Shown piece by piece: positions 5,174 to 13,695 of a DNA stretch of 64,000 nt. Source of the stretch: Oculina patagonica. Taxonomy: Eukaryota. A model generated the notes under the pieces. It was given only the letters and a program-made list of their open reading frames with translations, had not been told where the DNA came from and did not search any database. The number at the start of each line of letters is the position of its first letter. Position 1 is the stretch's first letter. The position numbers were made by a program, and so were the translations under genes. Location: the NCBI RefSeq assembly GCF_052425735.1, contig NC_135768.1:7812001-7876000 (forward strand). The letters are read 5' to 3'.

Positions 5174-5652
5174 TATCAACTTTTGCATCAAACTATTTCT
5201 TCCTCTTAGCCGGTTTGTAGCAAGTAAAAGACGGGTGGCATTGTTCCTCAGATTCAAAACAATTTGATTAATTAGTAAGGCAGAGAAATGTCGACTCGAG
5301 TAACTAATAGACTACAATTTTATCTTGTTTGTTAGAATGCGATATACCGATCGAATTAACTGGTGATAGGGGAAACTTCACAAGTCCAGGTGGATATGAA
5401 GGTTATCCTAACAACACAAACTGCAGGTAACATGAAATAAACGGTGCCATGCGTGGCACGATTTATTGTTGATAAAATTTCATGTTTAAAACGTTCTTGC
5501 ATTATACGAAAGTATCAGCTCCTAAGGTAGGAAATTACCAAGGAGGAATGAAATAAGGAAATTGTTTACTCAAATTCTGTTGCGACAATCGACAAAAATG
5601 AAATGGGCACGGTAACCCAGAGAATTCAGTTAACATTAGTGAGTAGAAATTT

Positions 5653-5687
<35 letters not shown>

Positions 5688-8600
5688 TTTTTTGGAAAAA
5701 TTTTTAAAAAACCATTTTTATGTTGTTAGAAGAACGTTTTAGCCGTTTGACTGACGTCTGTCAGTTTAAACACCATAGTCGTTTGAAAAAAGTCCCTCGT
5801 AATCTCCCCAGCAAGGGTAATTTAGCTCAAATAAATAGACGCGGTTTGGAGAAGTTAGAGCTAGCACTGTTTGGAGAAGTCAAAGAAAATAGGGGGGGAG
5901 AGAGGGTGACAAAATTGGTCCTAGCTATCTTTCAAGCTCGTTCACCTTCCTCGTCTACGCTCCTTTCCAAACCGCTTCTAACTACGCATTATTTTTTTAC
6001 TTTATCTTTCTGTATTTCAGTTGGGTCATCAAAGGAGACTATAACGCCAAAATCAACATCACATTTCACGACTTTGACTTGGAATTGAGCAAGACATGTC
6101 TTCCGTATGATTACGTCAAAGTATCAGACATGTGTAACAAGTCAAAGACTTGGTCAAAGAACCTGGGAACAGGAGACAACGAAGATGGATACTGCGGCAA
6201 TATGACTTCGTTTACTGTCACATCACGCTGCCAGAAAGTTCGAGTGCAGTTTAAATCTGATGACTCCATAACGGGAAGAGGATTCAACGCCACCTTTGAG
6301 ATCATTCCTGTTCCAAGTGAGTCGAAAAATCATTAACATTGGACCAATCGATCTGACTAGCCATCCATCCCCCCTCCTTCTCTCCCTCCTTCCCACCCTC
6401 CCGTCCCCCTCCGTCCGTCCATCCGTCCATCCATCCGTAGATCCAACTACNNNNNNNNNNNNNNNNNNNNNNNNNNNNNNNNNNNNNNNNNNNNNNNNNN
6501 NNNNNNNNNNNNNNNNNNNNNNNNNNNNNNNNNNNNNNNNNNNNNNNNNNNNNNNNNNNNNNNNNNNNNNNNNNNNNNNNNNNNNNNNNNACTTACCTAC
6601 CTACTTTCCTTCCAACCCACCACCNNNNNNNNNNNNNNNNNNNNNNNNNNNNNNNNNNNNNNNNNNNNNNNNNNNNNNNNNNNNNNNNNNNNNNNNNNNN
6701 NNNNNNNNNNNNNNNNNNNNNNNNNNNNNNNNNNNNNNNNNNNNNNNNNNNNNNNNNNNNNNNNNNNNNNNNNNNNNNNNNNNNNNNNNNNNNNNNNNNN
6801 NCCTACCTACTTTCCTTCCAACCCACCACCCACCCACCCACTTACCTCCCTNNNNNNNNNNNNNNNNNNNNNNNNNNNNNNNNNNNNNNNNNNNNNNNNN
6901 NNNNNNNNNNNNNNNNNNNNNNNNNNNNNNNNNNNNNNNNNNNNNNNNNNNNNNNNNNNNNNNNNNNNNNNNNNNNNNNNNNNNNNNNNNNNNNNNNNNN
7001 NNNNNNNNNNNNNNNNNNNNNNNNNNNNNNNNNNNNNNNNNNNNNNNNNNNNNNNNNNNNNNNNNNNNNNNNNNNNNNNNNNNNNNNNNNNNNNNNNNNN
7101 NNNNNNNNNNNNNNNNNNNNNNNNNNNNNNNNNNNNNNNNNNNNNNNNNNNNNNNNNNNNNNNNNNNNNNNNNNNNNNNTTCTCCATACTTCCTTCCCTC
7201 CCTTGCTCCATGCCTCCATCCATCCTTGTCATGTATCGTTTGTTTGTTACAATAATCTGACATCTTTTTCGTGCCACGGTTTATTACAGAGCCACCGGAG
7301 ATACTAACATTCTGCCTCGTTGGTACCAAAAACTGTTCAGAAAGTCTGGTTGTAACGGAAACCTTCGATGAGACGCTGAAGTGCGAGGTATCAGCATCTC
7401 CAGAGGCACTGGTCTATTGGTCTTATCTCGGATCAGATCGCAGGAATGCCAATCAACCACTCGACACCCGTGAAAGGCGCATGATCGACAATCACGATGG
7501 AAGTCTACGGATAAGGGGCCTTAGGAGAAATGACACTGGGTATTACAGGTGTTATGCGAATAACTCCGAAGGAGACGACGAACTTGTGATGCATTTGCGC
7601 GTGAAAGGTAAACTGGGGATTGTCATCTTCCAAATTCTCTTCACAAGTCCCTATATACTTCTTATGGCAACAGTGGGGAGAATTCGATGTTTAATATCAG
7701 TGCTTTTAGTAATATTGTTTGTATACTGGATTTTAATTGACTTTTTTTATTTATTTAAATCCACCTTGAAGCTGAAAAGTAGAGAATAAACTCCATGGTA
7801 ATTTAAAGGGCTGTAAAGTAACCAGTTTGTCAAGGTTTCCTCGGTAATTTGCTGGTACCAGTTGGGTTCGGTAGCAGCTCTAGCAAGTCTCACATGAATG
7901 GCTCGCTATCCTTCGAGAGAACAATAAAACGATAGCAGGAACAATGCCTCTAGCCCTAGAAATCAATAACAACTGCTACGCTAGGGGACTAATAGAATCA
8001 CAAGTTTACGAGAGCTGTTACACTACTGCACCAATTTATACCCTTGGGTAGAAAGAGGTGCTGTAAGAAAATGGTGCTGTGTTCAAAAGCAAACAAGGGC
8101 CTTAACTGCAATTACAGACAAAAATCCAACACCCTAACCATAAGACCATTAAGTGCCTCACTCAATGATTAAAGGATGTACATTTAACGGACCTAAGTCA
8201 GCCTCCGCTATTTCCGATACCATCAATATTATGATAACTGTATGGTAAAGCGAAATCTTATTGCATTGCTGTAAGTTGTATTACTTGAACTCTGGTTAAT
8301 TACCTTTAGCAGTTTCACAGAGATATTTTTCGTTTAGACACACGTAAATATAATATAAAATATTAATATAAGAAATATAAATATAATACCAAAACTCTCG
8401 TATGTAATAAACAAAAACAAAGACGCGGCTGACTAGGGTCCTTTAAGGAAATACTGTCATCCTTTTCTCCAATCTTTTTTTTTCTTTGGTTTTCAGAGAA
8501 GTGCAAATGCCCCAAGGTTATCAAGGCTAACTGGTACGACATTCCACCATACATTCGCGACGAAGGATCCGACCGGGAACCCTCTGGCTTATTCCCGATG

Positions 8601-10647
8601 CTTCTCCAAACAATCATTCCACTGTGTTGTGGAAACTGCTCGGAGGGCGACGGTCCGTCATCGATCTCCTACATCGACCAAAAAGAAAACCTGGTAGCCA
8701 TCAAAAATATCCGCAACTTTGAAACTGATGACACGATAACGTTTCCGATCAGTGGCAAGAAGGAGGATCGTTTTTATCAGAATGACTTCAAGTTTATGCC
8801 CCTGGTAGGCTCGCCTGGCGTTGCTTTTATTGTTGTTGACGAGCCACCTGGTACTTCAGCCAACGCCGTGTTCCAATCTGTCCTGTCTGGTTGGCCTGTG
8901 CTTCTTCTCACGCTCATGATGGCCTTACTGTCCGGGATAATTATGTGGGGACTGGTAAGTACGATTCAATCTTGAACACACTCCCCCCTTCCCCGGTCTT
9001 AACTTTTGCTAGGATATCCCCGGCTTACGTGACTGATGAATAAATGACCTAGCTCCCATAAGTTTCTTAAAGCTCAGAGGTCGAACGGCCGACCGTTGTG
9101 CAAAAGGCTATAGATTATATTCTTCTTGGAGTGAAATCTATAACCTGGACTATTTGTCCTTACTAAGTTATGGATATCTCTTTCTCAGTTTATTTATTGC
9201 TTGTGTCTGCGGCGACCACTGTAGTTCTGTCATCTTGAACATCCTCTTCCCCTGTCTCTTGTAGCATCCAGTCTCCCACGACCGAGATCACCCTCACTGA
9301 GATTATCTTGAAGACCCACAATCACTGAGTAAGGAGATTGCATGTTGATATTGATGGAATTTTTTTACCATGATTTTGTTTTAAAGGACACGTGGTATAA
9401 CCCGGACGAGTTTCCGAGGTCGTTTATCAAAGGCAGCGGAGAAGGTTTCTGGTGGGCTTTTGTTACTATGACAACCGTAGGGTGAGTGCTATCTTAAAAT
9501 ATATTTGCAGAGAAAAGTTTTCTCAGCTTACTTCGTATTCTTCTTTTCAAAGAAGACCTGGTTAAAAGAAGAAAGCAACTCTCCAATAAGTAGTTAGTGT
9601 TGTACATTTTTTTTTTTTTGCTACATATTTTTTGGTCAGTTGAATAACAATTCTCTGCTACCTCGTTTTGTTACAGTTATGGCGATCGATCTCCTCGTGG
9701 ATTTGTGGCTCGTATTTTTGCGATAGTCTGGGTTCTCGTTGGCCTCGTTATCACGTCCATTTTCACTGGTGTTGTGACTACTTCCTTGACAGCCATAACA
9801 CTGAGTACTGACGTCAAACTGTATGGTACTAAGGTGGGTTCCAGCCGTGCCCTTAAATTTAGCTGTTATGCATAGAAACTATGAAACCATTTAACAAAAA
9901 GATGATTATACACTTTCCTGGTACTGTTTATAATACCTGTGCAGCTGAGTTAACAGACGAAATCTTAGCCTGTGACCATTTACACGAAAGCTATAAAGCA
10001 GTACTTTCATAGAAAATACAGCCAATCAGAATACAGGAAAGCCGTTGTATATTCGACGGTATTCAACCCAACCTTCCCATCGTGCGCTGCGATTGTATTT
10101 TCGACGAAATTTAGTAAGCGTATTTTCTATGGCATGGTATAAAATAGTTACACAACACTTTCTCGTTGTATACTATGGAATATCCCACGAGTCACTTGTA
10201 TTTTCTTGGTATACACACGAGCCTTTAGGCGAGTTTGTGACTCGTGGGATATTCCATAGTATACCACTCGAAAGCGTTGCATAACTAGTATATACAAGGT
10301 GCTTCTAACTTTTAAGTCAGTGTATGAATTCCTTGTGTGCGGCCATTCCGAACAACGTTAGATTGGCACTGGTTAAAATGCCGCAATAGGTGGATTTAAC
10401 TTTTTTTTTTAATTTGCGTCTGTGGATAAAAACATCAAGCGTGAAGAATAGCCGTTATTGATTTCATTATTTTGAGTAACACTTTTGACATCAAAGGCAG
10501 TTTGTTGGATAACTCGCAGTAGATGTTATTTTATCCTTGCGTTATGGGTGATCATGTTTTAGTAATAGTTCGACTTAATCGCCGACCGGTTAGCTCAGTT
10601 GGTAGAGCGCCGGACTACCGTGCGAGAGGTCTCGGGTTCGAGTCCCA

Positions 10648-10688
<41 letters not shown>

Positions 10689-13600
10689 TATGCTGCCTTT
10701 GCAATGACATCTGCAAATGGTTTGATATTCTAGTCTTCTCGGATAAGGACGATAAACCGTAGGCCCCGTCTCCTGCATCTTCAGTGTCACGGTCAGCAGG
10801 GGACGTAAAAGAACCCACACACTTATCGTTAAGAGAAGGGCATGATGACTTAAGTTAAAGTTACAACTTTTTTGTTACAGATTGCAGCAGTGGCTAACTC
10901 TACCGAGTACCGGCTAGGACTGAATAAAAATGCGAACATGACAGGTTCGTGTTCACTAAGTTTCTTTGGGTTCACGTGTCTATTTTAACTCCAAAAATGA
11001 CTTTGATGTATCAAAAAAAATTAGGGAACAATGCCTATACGTAAGTAATAAGAGATAAAAAGCAATTTCAAGTCAGATTTCGGAGGTGGAAACGTTTAAT
11101 ATATAAGCAGTGATATCTAACACTTAATGACTGGTCTTGAGGGAAACAGTTAATTTTGTTTGCCGAGATTCTAGGGAAACAGAATCAACTAGTTTCCCGA
11201 GGTACCAGTCATTAAATTATTTGTTATGTGTTAAATATATGAAGACCTGTTAACCTTTAGTCACAGAGTTTAACCTTCCGTAAACGAAACCGTCGTTGTG
11301 TGCGACTATTCAATGTTAAGCTTTTGAGCAGTTCTTTCAAATAGTGCTATTTGTCTCTTGAGAACGAAATTTGGATTTTTTTCTCTTTCTCATTTGGACA
11401 TCTTGAGGATTAAAGGTTAGTTATACTTGCATTTAGCCCTATTCTGCGCAGCATGTTGGGCGAGTCACAACATGATGCGTAGAATAGGGCTAAATGGAAA
11501 GAAATAGTTGTTGCCTCATGTCTCACAAGGGATGAAGAGTATTAAGTAAGTAACGAAGTCTACATGCACTGACATGTGTTTTTACTATGTGATTCTAATC
11601 TCACAGCATATCACGACTTACAAGCGATTGTGGAACCTCTGAAGAATCGCGAAAATGGCTTGAAGGGAGTGTTAGTCGACACTTACGTCGCTGGCGAAAT
11701 GTCAGATTTTTCCAGCGAGGAGCTACGTGTCAATAAGATCATTGATCACAACTCGTACTACGGTATTGTATTTGGAGGAGGGAAGCTGGAAGGAAGAGAA
11801 TTTCAAACCTGCTTCGAGGATTATGTCCTGTCGAATCAAGCTGACATCTTTGAGACTGTGAAGCAGAACACTCAACCCATGAGTGTAAGCTTTTTATATA
11901 CATTCATTATATAAACTGCAGTGGTGTGGCGAGTGATAGCAAATCGAGAAAAATGGTATCACACATGTGTGGATAAAAATGATATCCATACATGTGTGTT
12001 ATCATTTTTGACCAATCAGCTCGCAGAATTTGCCATGTTTCAATGTGAAACATCCTCATGTTTCAAGTCGAAACATCTTCGGATCTTCCTCGGCAATCTT
12101 CGGAAAACTTCGGAATCACTCGTACAACCTTACGACAACATTCTAAAAATTTTCGGAAATCTTCTGAAAATGGTCGGGAATCTTCGGAAAATCGTCAAAA
12201 ACATCGTAATTAGTAGGTTTATCCTCTATTACTCATTGCGTTTAGGGTTATGATTGCTTGGAACGACGATGGTCCAAAATGTCGCTCAACGCCATTCTTT
12301 GATAAAATAATATGCCCTAAGTCCTCTATTTTTATCGTTGAGAAAAGCTGAGAGGGGAGAAATTGGACTAAAGTAGCTTTCATTGTGTTCTTGTTTCGTG
12401 ATTGTGAATACGTTCAAATCTAGATATGTTCGGACCATTACATATCTCGGACATCCCAACAGATTCGTTCTGTTCAAAGTTTGAATTCAATTTTTTTCGT
12501 AATTATGAATGGCTGAGCTACTGAGCGAGTGCGACCCCTAACTCCCTTTACCGGAGAAGAGAATAAGGAGTTGGTAGTGACTTTTTTTCCAGGGAGTACT
12601 GTAGCGTAACTGTCCATTCAGTAAAAAAGGCGTGTAAGCGTCTTACGCGTCCATCTGTCTATTTCTACAGGAACCGTCCGAGAGCGCAGCAGTAGAACGT
12701 TCATCCGGGTTATTTGACGCGACCTCTCCCTTGTTCCAAAACGCCATCTACACGTGCCTCGGCCTGCTGCTGTTTTTTACGGCTTGTGGCATTATCTGGG
12801 ATTACGGCTATATGAGGCATTGGAAGAAAAAAGCAGAAATGGGTAAGACCAACGGGATTTTTAAGAGGATCATAAATTTCTCCCCGCAGTTTTTGTGGCT
12901 TTTTCGGCTAGTGTACGTTACAGGAAATAGCTATTGATACATAACGAGCTCTGTTTGGCTACCACTGACATTCATCTTTGGGAATAACATATTATTAGCC
13001 ATTTTTACTCCTGGGTGGAGAATAGTATTATAGTGAGAGTATTGTGTCTTGCCCAAAAACACAACATAAGGCCAGTGGCCATTACCCAAACCCGGACATT
13101 TGCATTTACAATCCAACACGATCTCCACGTACAGTCAACTCCTACTATTACTGACACCTTCGGGACCACGATTTGGTGTCCGCAATAGAGAAAATACGTA
13201 GTGGCGGGAGGTATTTTCAGTAATTCTTATTCGCCGGGATTAAACTCTTTTCCCTAGTAAGGCGGTGTCCGTAAAAGCGAGGTGTCTGCAAGGCGGGAGT
13301 TGACTTTATTCTTTTAAAGGCACACAAAACCATGTGTGTATGAAGCTAAGTGATAAACTACATTTACTTTACTTTGCATATCATGTGGAAATGGCTGTTT
13401 CACAGTTTTGCAACAAATATATCACGATAAACTTCGAATTCTTCATTTCTAGCCATGGAAATTTTGCCGTATCTTGCATTTCCAAAATGACTGACAAGCT
13501 GTCTCGCGTTGCATTGCAGATGAGCTTGAACTGCTCGGTGGACCTGGGTACGAAATGGCCAAGAGGAACCTGGACATGATGGATGCCTTGATGCAGGAGG

Positions 13601-13695
13601 TTCAGGAGTTTTACGAGAACTGGACAAAGAGACTCGACGATATCACGAATAAACACGAAGAAGAACAAAGGATACAAGCCAAGCAGAAAAAGTAG
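1374..13695 (+). CDS. Gene A: CUB-Ig-fused, iGluR-topology channel with K+ selectivity filter (GluR0/AvGluR1-like), 738 aa, 12 exons
   Basis: Manual model join(1374-1418,1527-1593,5336-5426,6021-6316,7290-7607,8497-8954,9387-9481,9677-9833,10881-10944,11607-11884,12671-12842,13520-13695). All introns are GT-AG, phases are compatible, and the total is 2217 nt, open to TAG. Signal peptide MQCEKPAGGFLKIILLLKLLLAISLWTEA, then CUB, Ig, S1, M1, WWAFVTMTTVGYGD, M3, S2, M4 and a coiled coil. Confidence 0.88.
5142..5173. repeat. (ATC)n microsatellite
   Basis: About 10 perfect ATC units. Confidence 0.95.
5336..6316 (+). CDS. Gene A exons 3-4 (5336-5426, 6021-6316): CUB domain
   Basis: C...LTGDRGNFTSPG..GYPNNTNCSWVI...INITFHDFDLE...C.YDYVKV.D...YCG...VRVQFKSDDSITGRGFNATF is the classic CUB consensus, including the Tyr/Glu/Asp/Asp Ca2+-site signature. 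Confidence 0.93.
6361..7222. repeat. Pyrimidine-rich (CCAT/CCTA/CCCA) microsatellite region with three N runs (6451-6590, 6625-6801, 6852-7179)
   Basis: The flanks and islands between the Ns are simple repeats. It lies in gene A intron 4. Confidence 0.85.
7290..7607 (+). CDS. Gene A exon 5: immunoglobulin (I-set-like) domain
   Basis: LKCEVSASPEALVYW...DGSLRIRGLRRNDTGYYRCYANNSEG shows the B-strand Cys, C-strand Trp and D-x-G-x-Y-x-C motif. Phase 1-1 exon. Confidence 0.93.
8497..9833 (+). CDS. Gene A exons 6-8 (8497-8954, 9387-9481, 9677-9833): S1 lobe, M1, pore helix and TTVGYGD filter, M3
   Basis: WYDIPPY...GLFPMLL...CCGNC...GVAFIV; M1 WPVLLLTLMMALLSGIIMWGL; EGFWWAFVTMTTVG|YGDRSPRGFVARIFAIVWVLVGLVITSIFTGVVTTSLT. 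Confidence 0.92.
10143..10289. repeat. Palindromic interspersed element (non-autonomous)
   Basis: Inverted arms GTATACTATGGAATATCCCACGAGTCAC / GTGACTCGTGGGATATTCCATAGTATAC, with outer AGTTA...TAACT. Confidence 0.7.
10581..10843 (+). mobile_element. tRNA-derived SINE with V-domain-like body
   Basis: A box TAGCTCAGTTGGTAGAGC and B box GGTTCGAGTCCC, followed by TCGGATAAGGACGATAAACCGTAGGCCCCGTCTC...GGACGTAAAAGAACCCACACACTTATCGTTAAGAG, which resembles the V-SINE core. Confidence 0.75.
10881..13695 (+). CDS. Gene A exons 9-12: S2 lobe, M4 helix, cytoplasmic coiled coil
   Basis: IAAVANSTEYRLG...GVLVDTY...YYGIVF...QTCF (S2); AIYTCLGLLLFFTACGIIWDYGY followed by the basic stop-transfer RHWKKK (M4); LMQEVQEFYENWTKRLDDITNKHEEEQ, then TAG at 13693-13695. 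Confidence 0.88.
13132..13307. mobile_element. Tc1/mariner-type MITE
   Basis: TA-CAGTCAACTCC...GGGAGTTGACTT-TA terminal inverted repeats. Confidence 0.6.

Follow-up and report, generated by a model that had tools for sequence, protein, structure and literature searches.

The window analysed here, a stretch of 64,000 nucleotides from Oculina patagonica (positions 7,812,001 to 7,876,000 of contig NC_135768.1, forward strand), holds two related genes, which we call A and B. Both are predicted to encode a channel in which an extracellular clamshell domain is split into two halves, S1 and S2, by a potassium channel core. The region at the centre of this study, positions 8497-11884 of the window, contains five exons of gene A on the plus strand, namely those for S1 with the segment M1, for the pore helix, for M3, and for the two parts of S2 (S2a and S2b). 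Position 8497 is the first base past the CAG acceptor of the S1 exon and 11884 is the last base ahead of the GTAAGC donor of the S2b exon.

The S1 exon (8497-8954), with a phase-1 acceptor and a phase-0 donor, encodes the S1 half, the stretch preceding M1 and M1 itself. The pore-helix exon (9387-9481) ends in TMTTVG and matches K-channel entries of the PDB, and the exon at 9677-9833 completes the GYGD filter, continues through M3 into the start of the M3-S2 linker and has weak Pfam matches to Lig_chan and Ion_trans_2. The S2a exon (IAAVANSTEYRLG, 10881-10944) aligns to the GluR0 ligand-binding core, and the S2b exon (11607-11884) is defined by its splice sites and by HMMER and hhalign alignments. 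Outside the region proper, gene A goes on with an M4 exon (12671-12842), for which AlphaFold predicts a helix at residues 373-416, and a C-terminal exon (13520-13692). Splicing of 8499-8954, 9387-9481, 9677-9833, 10881-10944, 11607-11884, 12671-12842 and 13520-13692 gives a product of 465 amino acids that is 100% identical to residues 274-738 of P0157, the hypothetical Oculina patagonica protein ACROYT_G035167. Since our splice reproduces the annotated protein, the gene model is independently supported. Residues 38-274 of P0157 are matched by three exons further upstream on the same strand (5335-5424, 6019-6315 and 7283-7612), the last of which contains an I-set Ig domain according to Pfam; the precomputed Pfam annotation of P0157 lists CUB and Ig. 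Orthologues of gene A, 75-88% identical, occur as uninterrupted open reading frames of 726-752 amino acids on contigs of 2.5-4.5 kb. These contigs must be transcripts, because gene A spans more than 8 kb and contains introns.

Gene B is, as judged by its sequence, a minus-strand paralogue of gene A with the same exon plan (25778-25312, 25124-25030, 24443-24287, 23859-23793, 22758-22487, 21429-21255 and 20434-20148). The first of these exons encodes S1 and M1 and is 80% identical to Stylophora P0258, the S2a exon (VSAIDDSAEFRLG) lies at 23859-23793, the S2b exon at 22758-22487 and the M4 exon at 21429-21255. The filter sequence TMTTVGYGD spans an exon junction in both genes, 9481/9677 in A and 25030/24443 in B. 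The whole gene B region (36168-20148) is colinear with P0258, a protein of 1820 amino acids, and Pfam finds a LamG domain in one of its upstream exons. The identity of the B channel module is 80% with Stylophora P0258, 76% with Montipora P0257 and 50% with Nematostella P0011.

The preliminary description of this DNA, made from the letters alone, had read the extracellular domain as a clamshell like that of ionotropic glutamate receptors (iGluRs). AlphaFold models, structural alignment and profile homology all agree with this reading. The S1 and S2 landmarks on which it was based (PPY, G(L/I)FP..L, P.V.S.GVAFIV, A...S(T/A)E, G.L.D.Y and YG.V) are all common to A and B. Their sharing is not due to chance, as a profile built from only two S1 sequences matches 764 cluster representatives at E <= 1e-3, 325 of them at E <= 1e-10, and the motifs persist from Nematostella to the stony corals.

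AlphaFold2 was run on an alignment of 107 rows, and all family counts given below refer to these 107 members. Gene A was modelled as residues 271-698, with a predicted local distance difference test score (pLDDT) of 87 and a predicted template modelling score (pTM) of 0.75. Gene B was represented by its Stylophora orthologue (80% identical), with a pLDDT of 90 and a pTM of 0.79. Foldseek aligned about 460 columns with the ligand-binding and transmembrane domains of GluA2, GluN1/2, GluD2 and GluK2 at E values of 1e-13 to 1e-11. The top matches in VIA-align were the bacterial GluR0 cores 2pyy (Z 19.5 for A, 20.6 for B) and 1ii5 (Z 18.9 for A, 20.6 for B), with a root-mean-square deviation of 2.6-2.9 Å over 202-210 of about 220 residues, followed by glutamine-, arginine- and lysine-binding proteins. 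At the sequence level, the S2 profile on its own is enough to find 2pyy, 1ii5 and related binding proteins (E 1e-6 to 3e-6).

As a bacterial control we fetched 80 loci with the same filter, of which 68 encode GluR0-type proteins of 330-420 amino acids. Aligned by hhalign, the animal family and these 68 proteins match with a probability of 100 and an E value of 8.3e-46 over 337 columns that run through S1, M1, the pore, M3 and S2; with S1 alone the probability is 81 and the E value 1.2e-5. The bacterial reading frames stop directly after S2, where A and B both go on to M4. Furthermore, the M3 of A does not carry the SYTANLAAF gate motif and reads ...VITSIFTGVVTTSLTA... instead. In summary, models and profiles identify the domain as a compact GluR0-like clamshell, to which the family adds an M4 that has no bacterial counterpart.

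Searches with Pfam and with parts of the domain returned less. The exons of A and B have no match to the Pfam families Lig_chan-Glu_bd (PF10613) and SBP_bac_3 (PF00497), and when the 107 S1 and 107 S2 segments were submitted singly, four of the S1 segments gave a weak match to SBP_bac_3 (best E 0.005) and the S2 segments gave none. The precomputed Pfam annotation of the channel part consists of Lig_chan and Ion_trans only, and an ANF_receptor domain was not found by Pfam in A or B. Using phmmer, we obtained only chance matches of the single S1 and S2b exons of A to PDB sequences; the S1 profile alone found nothing in the PDB at E <= 10, and the results for the whole-module profile were swamped by K-channel pores. 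Language-model features put the S1 exon of B among clusters of PF10613 and PF00497 (score 0.93), which we regard as a lead only.

Next, we asked what has become of the residue that binds the alpha-carboxylate of the ligand. In iGluRs, the amino acid backbone is fixed by Arg485 together with an acidic residue at position 705 (PMC6307864), and R506, the equivalent of Arg485, was described as "absolutely conserved" among the tested iGluRs gated by glutamate, glycine, GABA, aspartate or D-serine (PMC13648236). It had been noted beforehand that the corresponding segment reads FPISGKKEDR in A and FPVYGRMEQT in B, with no arginine common to both. The two readings are correct (8742-8771 on the plus strand and 25524-25495 on the minus strand, respectively); the canonical column, however, lies one residue before the last position of the segment according to hhalign. 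In both hhalign runs it is column 93, which is Asp93 in A (8766-8768) and Gln in B.

The loss of the arginine extends far beyond these two genes. Only 2 of the 107 family members have Arg in column 93, compared with 60 of the 68 bacterial proteins, which carry the motif xLT(I/M)TxxRE...DF and, in 62 of 68 cases, the amine-binding Asp. In the animal family the column contains mostly Asp (47), Gln (16) or Glu (15); counting Asp with Glu (62) and Gln with Asn (19), it is acidic or an amide in 81 members, or 76%. Arg is scarce in the neighbouring columns as well, as none of columns 90-96 has Arg in more than 10 members and only 29 members have any Arg there at all. The same stretch forms helix D in iGluRs and binding proteins. 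In the models of A and of the B orthologue, on the other hand, the ten residues that link the FPxxG strand to the strand after it form no helix, at a pLDDT above 90 (in A, residues 90-99 are without helix). We also considered Arg94 of A (8769-8771) as a shifted functional arginine and rejected it, since it is present in only 8 of 14 sequences of the A clade; the position is Pro or Asp in two Stylophora-type sequences (P0162, P0161), Asn or Thr in sea anemones and Asp or Glu in two octocorals.

The remainder of the pocket has been retained. Pro86 (equivalent to P478 of GluA2), Ser/Thr246 (S654 of GluA2; Ser246 of A at 10899-10901) and Asp285 (the GluR0 Asp and E705 of GluA2) are each found in 106 of the 107 members. 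Asp285 was located by both HMMER and hhalign, and lies in the GVLVD of A (11678-11680) and in the ALID of B (22687-22685, minus strand). The hinge residues Tyr312 and Gly313 (YG of A at 11759-11764) are present in 101 and 105 members, and P86, S/T246, D285 and Y312 are among the few near-invariant columns of the ligand-binding domain. The equivalent of T480, column 88, is more variable, with Tyr in 52 members including B, and Ser88 in A. Seven of about 240 positions of the ligand-binding domain are clade-specific and conserved within clades, and three of them (88, 286 and 310) are at or next to canonical contacts, which is suggestive, with a rough p of about 0.04 on four clades only. Glu248 of A (10905-10907) occurs in 98 members, and we examined it as a second change of charge in the pocket, but dropped it as its orientation is not visible; GluN2 subunits also have Glu after the Ser-Thr of helix F.

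Six cysteines shared between A and B had been described as well. Indeed, each of the two proteins has exactly six extracellular cysteines, in the motifs CKC/CNC, CCGNC/CCGEC and QTCF/QKCF. In A these are Cys5 and Cys7 (8502-8510), four residues past the junction with the Ig exon, Cys46, Cys47 and Cys50 (8625-8639), and Cys329 (11810-11812), which is placed in helix J as it returns to lobe 1. In B, on the minus strand, CNC is at 25773-25765, CCGEC at 25653-25639 and the QKCF Cys at 22561-22559. The set is not peculiar to these two proteins, but is the commonest, ancestral pattern of the family. All six cysteines are present in 30 members, and another 31 have one aligned N-terminal Cys and the other four, with a second N-terminal Cys 6-12 residues upstream in the members sampled. 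Cys5, CC and Cys329 are found in 17 members, and CxC, Cys47 and Cys50 without Cys46 and Cys329 in 13.

The cysteines covary. Cys46 and Cys329 are both present in 93 members and both absent in 13 (p = 8e-16), Cys7 and Cys50 are both present in 75 and both absent in 19 (p = 7e-11), and Cys47 occurs in 106. These patterns point to three disulfides, which would link Cys46 with Cys329, Cys7 with Cys50, and the remaining N-terminal Cys with Cys47. In the hhalign register, CCGxC is a five-residue insert, opposite a gap on the bacterial side, at the end of helix A, and Cys329 sits in the helix by which S2 comes back to the upper lobe; for this reason all three predicted disulfides would belong to lobe 1. 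In this arrangement they would fasten the N-terminal linker and hold S1 and S2 together without crossing the cleft. Bacterial GluR0-type proteins have 0-2 cysteines in total, so the set is an animal addition.

How widespread is the family? Its named members come from anthozoans, hydrozoans, scyphozoans, hemichordates and annelids, and their annotations read only "uncharacterized", "potassium channel domain-containing", "Cubilin" or "sidekick". Where the filter is retained, it reads T[VLI]GYGD in all the full-length relatives examined. Proteins of about 500 (480-560) amino acids make up the largest clade; they have a signal peptide, the clamshell, the K+ pore and M4, but no ectodomain, and occur in Hydra, Hydractinia, Rhopilema, octocorals and stony corals (e.g. 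P0172, P0176, P0177, P0180, P0196 and P0193). This short clade has a pocket motif of its own, YGDMKD...NTEEQR(L/Y)G, which is kept from Hydra to corals, and it retains the family cysteines and the pocket invariants. Since the cysteines and the pocket are kept without an ectodomain, the clamshell appears to be an autonomous sensor, to which the ectodomains of A and B would have been added later. Full-text searches of the literature turned up no account of GluR0-type channels as an animal family, nor of genes A and B; what this study adds is the quantification of the arginine loss against the bacterial GluR0-type proteins, a correction of the register and a predicted map of the disulfides.

Taken together, these observations suggest the following working model. 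The region 8497-11884 would encode the sensor and the pore of one GluR0-type channel subunit, that is, a two-lobe solute-binding clamshell (S1 and S2), as compact as those of bacterial GluR0 and glutamine-binding protein, split by an M1-pore-M3 K-channel core and followed by M4. Three disulfides in the upper lobe would brace it, two of them pinning the N-terminal linker to the insert after helix A and one tying this insert to the returning S2 helix; as all three would be in the upper lobe, the cleft would stay free to open and close. Pro86, Ser/Thr246, Asp285 and Tyr312 may hold the amine of the ligand and cap the helix of the lower lobe, while the arginine that clamps the alpha-carboxylate in nearly all relatives that bind amino acids has given way to Asp in A and to Gln in B. 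A small soluble ligand would close the cleft, the closure would pull on or strain the M3 linkers, and the K+ pore would open. Such a ligand would more probably have no alpha-carboxylate, or be positively charged, and on the sequences and models it is plausible that it is not glutamate. We put the probability that the clamshell is a sensor that closes on a small ligand to open the K+ pore, and that this ligand is not an alpha-amino acid in the canonical pose, at roughly one half.

Several observations weigh against this interpretation. In a rival reading, the ligand of the clamshell would still be an alpha-amino acid, perhaps glutamate or glycine, held through a displaced basic residue (Lys90, Lys91 or Arg94 in A, Arg90 in B, or Arg250). 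The register of S1 comes from hhalign, where S1 alone reaches a probability of 81, and it may shift by one residue; likewise, AlphaFold may have missed a short helix at the arginine site. At least one Lys or Arg occurs in columns 90-95 in 88 members (82%, against about 50% expected). The four B orthologues, which range from Nematostella to corals, all have Arg at column 90, where the A clade usually has Lys. Furthermore, Arg250 on helix F, present in 83 members, is a potential carboxylate contact, so that a non-canonical contact through a loop Lys/Arg or through Arg250 could take the place of the lost one. The retained amine-binding Asp285 and helix-F Ser/Thr fit an amino acid too, and the closest folds are all amino acid binders. 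Against all this, the basic residue in the loop shifts from column to column, the net charge of the loop is zero or negative in 84 of the 107 members, the aligned arginine column itself is mostly acidic or an amide, as described above, the T480 position is a bulky Tyr in half of the family, and every characterised amino acid-gated iGluR has the canonical arginine (PMC13648236). We therefore consider an amino acid ligand held in this way possible, but rather doubtful.

A different explanation does without a free ligand. It had been proposed at the outset that the clamshell is disulfide-braced and transmits force to the gate; in this case it would serve as a coupler, either rigid or bistable, through which binding or pulling at an adhesion-type ectodomain (CUB-Ig in A, LamG-TSP1-FN3 in B) reaches the M3 gate. 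The ectodomains are indeed made of adhesion modules, the CxC that is probably disulfide-pinned to lobe 1 follows no more than about four residues after the last Ig strand, and the arginine is missing. The bracing agrees with the three predicted disulfides. The case for a transmission of force is weakened, because none of these disulfides, all placed in lobe 1, crosses the cleft, and because the largest and most widespread clade, which has no ectodomain to pull, keeps the two N-terminal cysteines, CC..C, the S2 Cys and the pocket invariants. Nor would a pure strut need P86, S/T246, D285 and Y312, which are among the most conserved residues, and we think a ligand-free coupler unlikely. Finally, one may suspect a decaying, non-functional remnant or an artefact of the gene model, as Pfam does not recognise the ligand-binding domain in any single member. 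This is hardly credible given a splice identical to the annotated ACROYT_G035167, orthologues that are uninterrupted on transcript contigs at 75-88% identity, AlphaFold models of high confidence, and a sequence kept from Nematostella to corals. A clamshell that senses a ligand other than a canonically bound amino acid is the reading that we prefer.

The surroundings of the two genes offered some further observations. A and B are convergent (5335-13692 on the plus strand and 36168-20148 on the minus strand). Their Nematostella orthologues, LOC5501882 (A) and LOC5501884 (B), are each on a contig of 22,031,953 bp, and in Stylophora LOC111334188 (A) and LOC111334203 (B) are each on a contig of 470,170 bp. 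The convergent pair therefore looks ancient. The same 24-Mb contig carries a second A-type gene of Oculina, P0158 (ACROYT_G035165), which has a channel module 87% identical and a gene number that differs by two; a tblastn search showed that it is not encoded within the 64-kb window. The intron of gene A between the M3 and S2a exons contains a tRNA-like sequence (10584-10656, plus strand) for which ARAGORN gives an undetermined anticodon, and which is probably a tRNA-derived short interspersed nuclear element. Inverted repeats that form hairpins lie in gene A introns at 10137-10295 (59-nt arms, 86% complementary) and 11427-11499 (32-nt arms, 91%), and resemble remnants of miniature transposons. 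Three runs of N (140, 177 and 328 bases) fall within 6451-7179, in the intron that separates the CUB exon (6019-6315) from the Ig exon (7283-7612).

Among known systems, the bacterial GluR0 channels come closest. Those of Synechocystis (Slr1257) and Nostoc punctiforme (1ii5, 2pyy), as well as the 68 channels of our control, share with A and B a clamshell of about 220 residues split by a T[VL]GYGD K-pore, and bacterial GluR0 shares with the animal family PP(Y/F), the S/T-capped helix F, the amine-binding Asp and the Y(G/A) hinge. The animal family differs in having M4, a cytoplasmic tail, three predicted disulfides, the CCGxC insert and often a large ectodomain, and in having no ligand arginine. 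GluR0-type channels with the exact motif [TS]MTT[VL]GYGD are common in marine and sediment bacteria, and the motif gave more than 600 matches; the hosts include Bacteroidota, Verrucomicrobiota, Pseudomonadota, Desulfobacterales and others, and one locus is from Poritiphilus flavus. The class-II (family 3) periplasmic binding proteins (GlnBP 1wdn, LAO-BP 1lst, ArgBP and DalS) have the same two-lobe fold (Z 17.5-20) and are reached by the S2 profile, but they are soluble and have no pore insertion. They hold the carboxylate of the ligand with a conserved arginine, which is missing in A and B.

Eukaryotic iGluRs (AMPA/kainate/delta/phi, NMDA, epsilon and lambda) have the S1-M1-P-M3-S2-M4 topology, the acidic 705 position and the helix-F Ser in common with A and B. 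In contrast to them, the A/B family has no ANF-type amino-terminal domain, no SYTANLAAF and no equivalent of Arg485, and has a K-channel filter in place of the Q/R/N site; the family cysteines presumably lie at other places than the disulfide of GluA2. The closest animal case in print is AvGluR1 of Adineta vaga, which is described as a receptor similar to bacterial iGluRs in phylogeny and structure, with a K+ selectivity signature (PMC12226733, with reference to Janovjak 2011 and Lomash 2013), and as activated by glutamate and many other amino acids (PMC12226733). As described there, it differs from A and B by its working amino acid site. For the meaning of the arginine loss, a functional precedent is provided by the ionotropic receptors (IRs) of arthropods and other protostomes. 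IRs, however, descend from AKDF-type cation channels in a separate, later radiation and have no K+ filter, and since A and B have the K+ filter and a GluR0-like core, the resemblance is one of functional analogy only.

What could such a family mean for the animals that have it? Across iGluRs, the arginine of the binding site is treated as diagnostic of amino acid recognition (PMC6307864, PMC13648236). A family that has exchanged it but kept the remaining pocket offers a natural experiment on the change of ligand class, for which there have hitherto been mainly the IRs of arthropods. For experiments, the analysis yields the boundaries of S1S2, the predicted disulfide pairs and, as a target for mutation, a single column occupied by Asp93 in A and by Gln in B. 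With its GluR0 core and added M4, the family links the architecture of bacterial GluR0 to that of animal iGluRs. It is tempting to go one step further and to see in A and B members of an ancient animal family of GluR0-type K+ channels, present in cnidarians, hemichordates and annelids, in which the arginine was swapped for an acidic or amide residue while the amine Asp was kept. Its members might then be inhibitory receptors gated by a messenger that is cationic or has no carboxylate (an amine, a polyamine, a quaternary ammonium compound or a metal ion, for instance), with the sensor fused, in the case of A and B, to adhesion-type ectodomains. We offer this wider view tentatively and regard it as somewhat doubtful. 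Chloride channels are the main known means of fast chemical inhibition in animals, and a widespread family of clamshell-gated K+ channels would be a different route to it.

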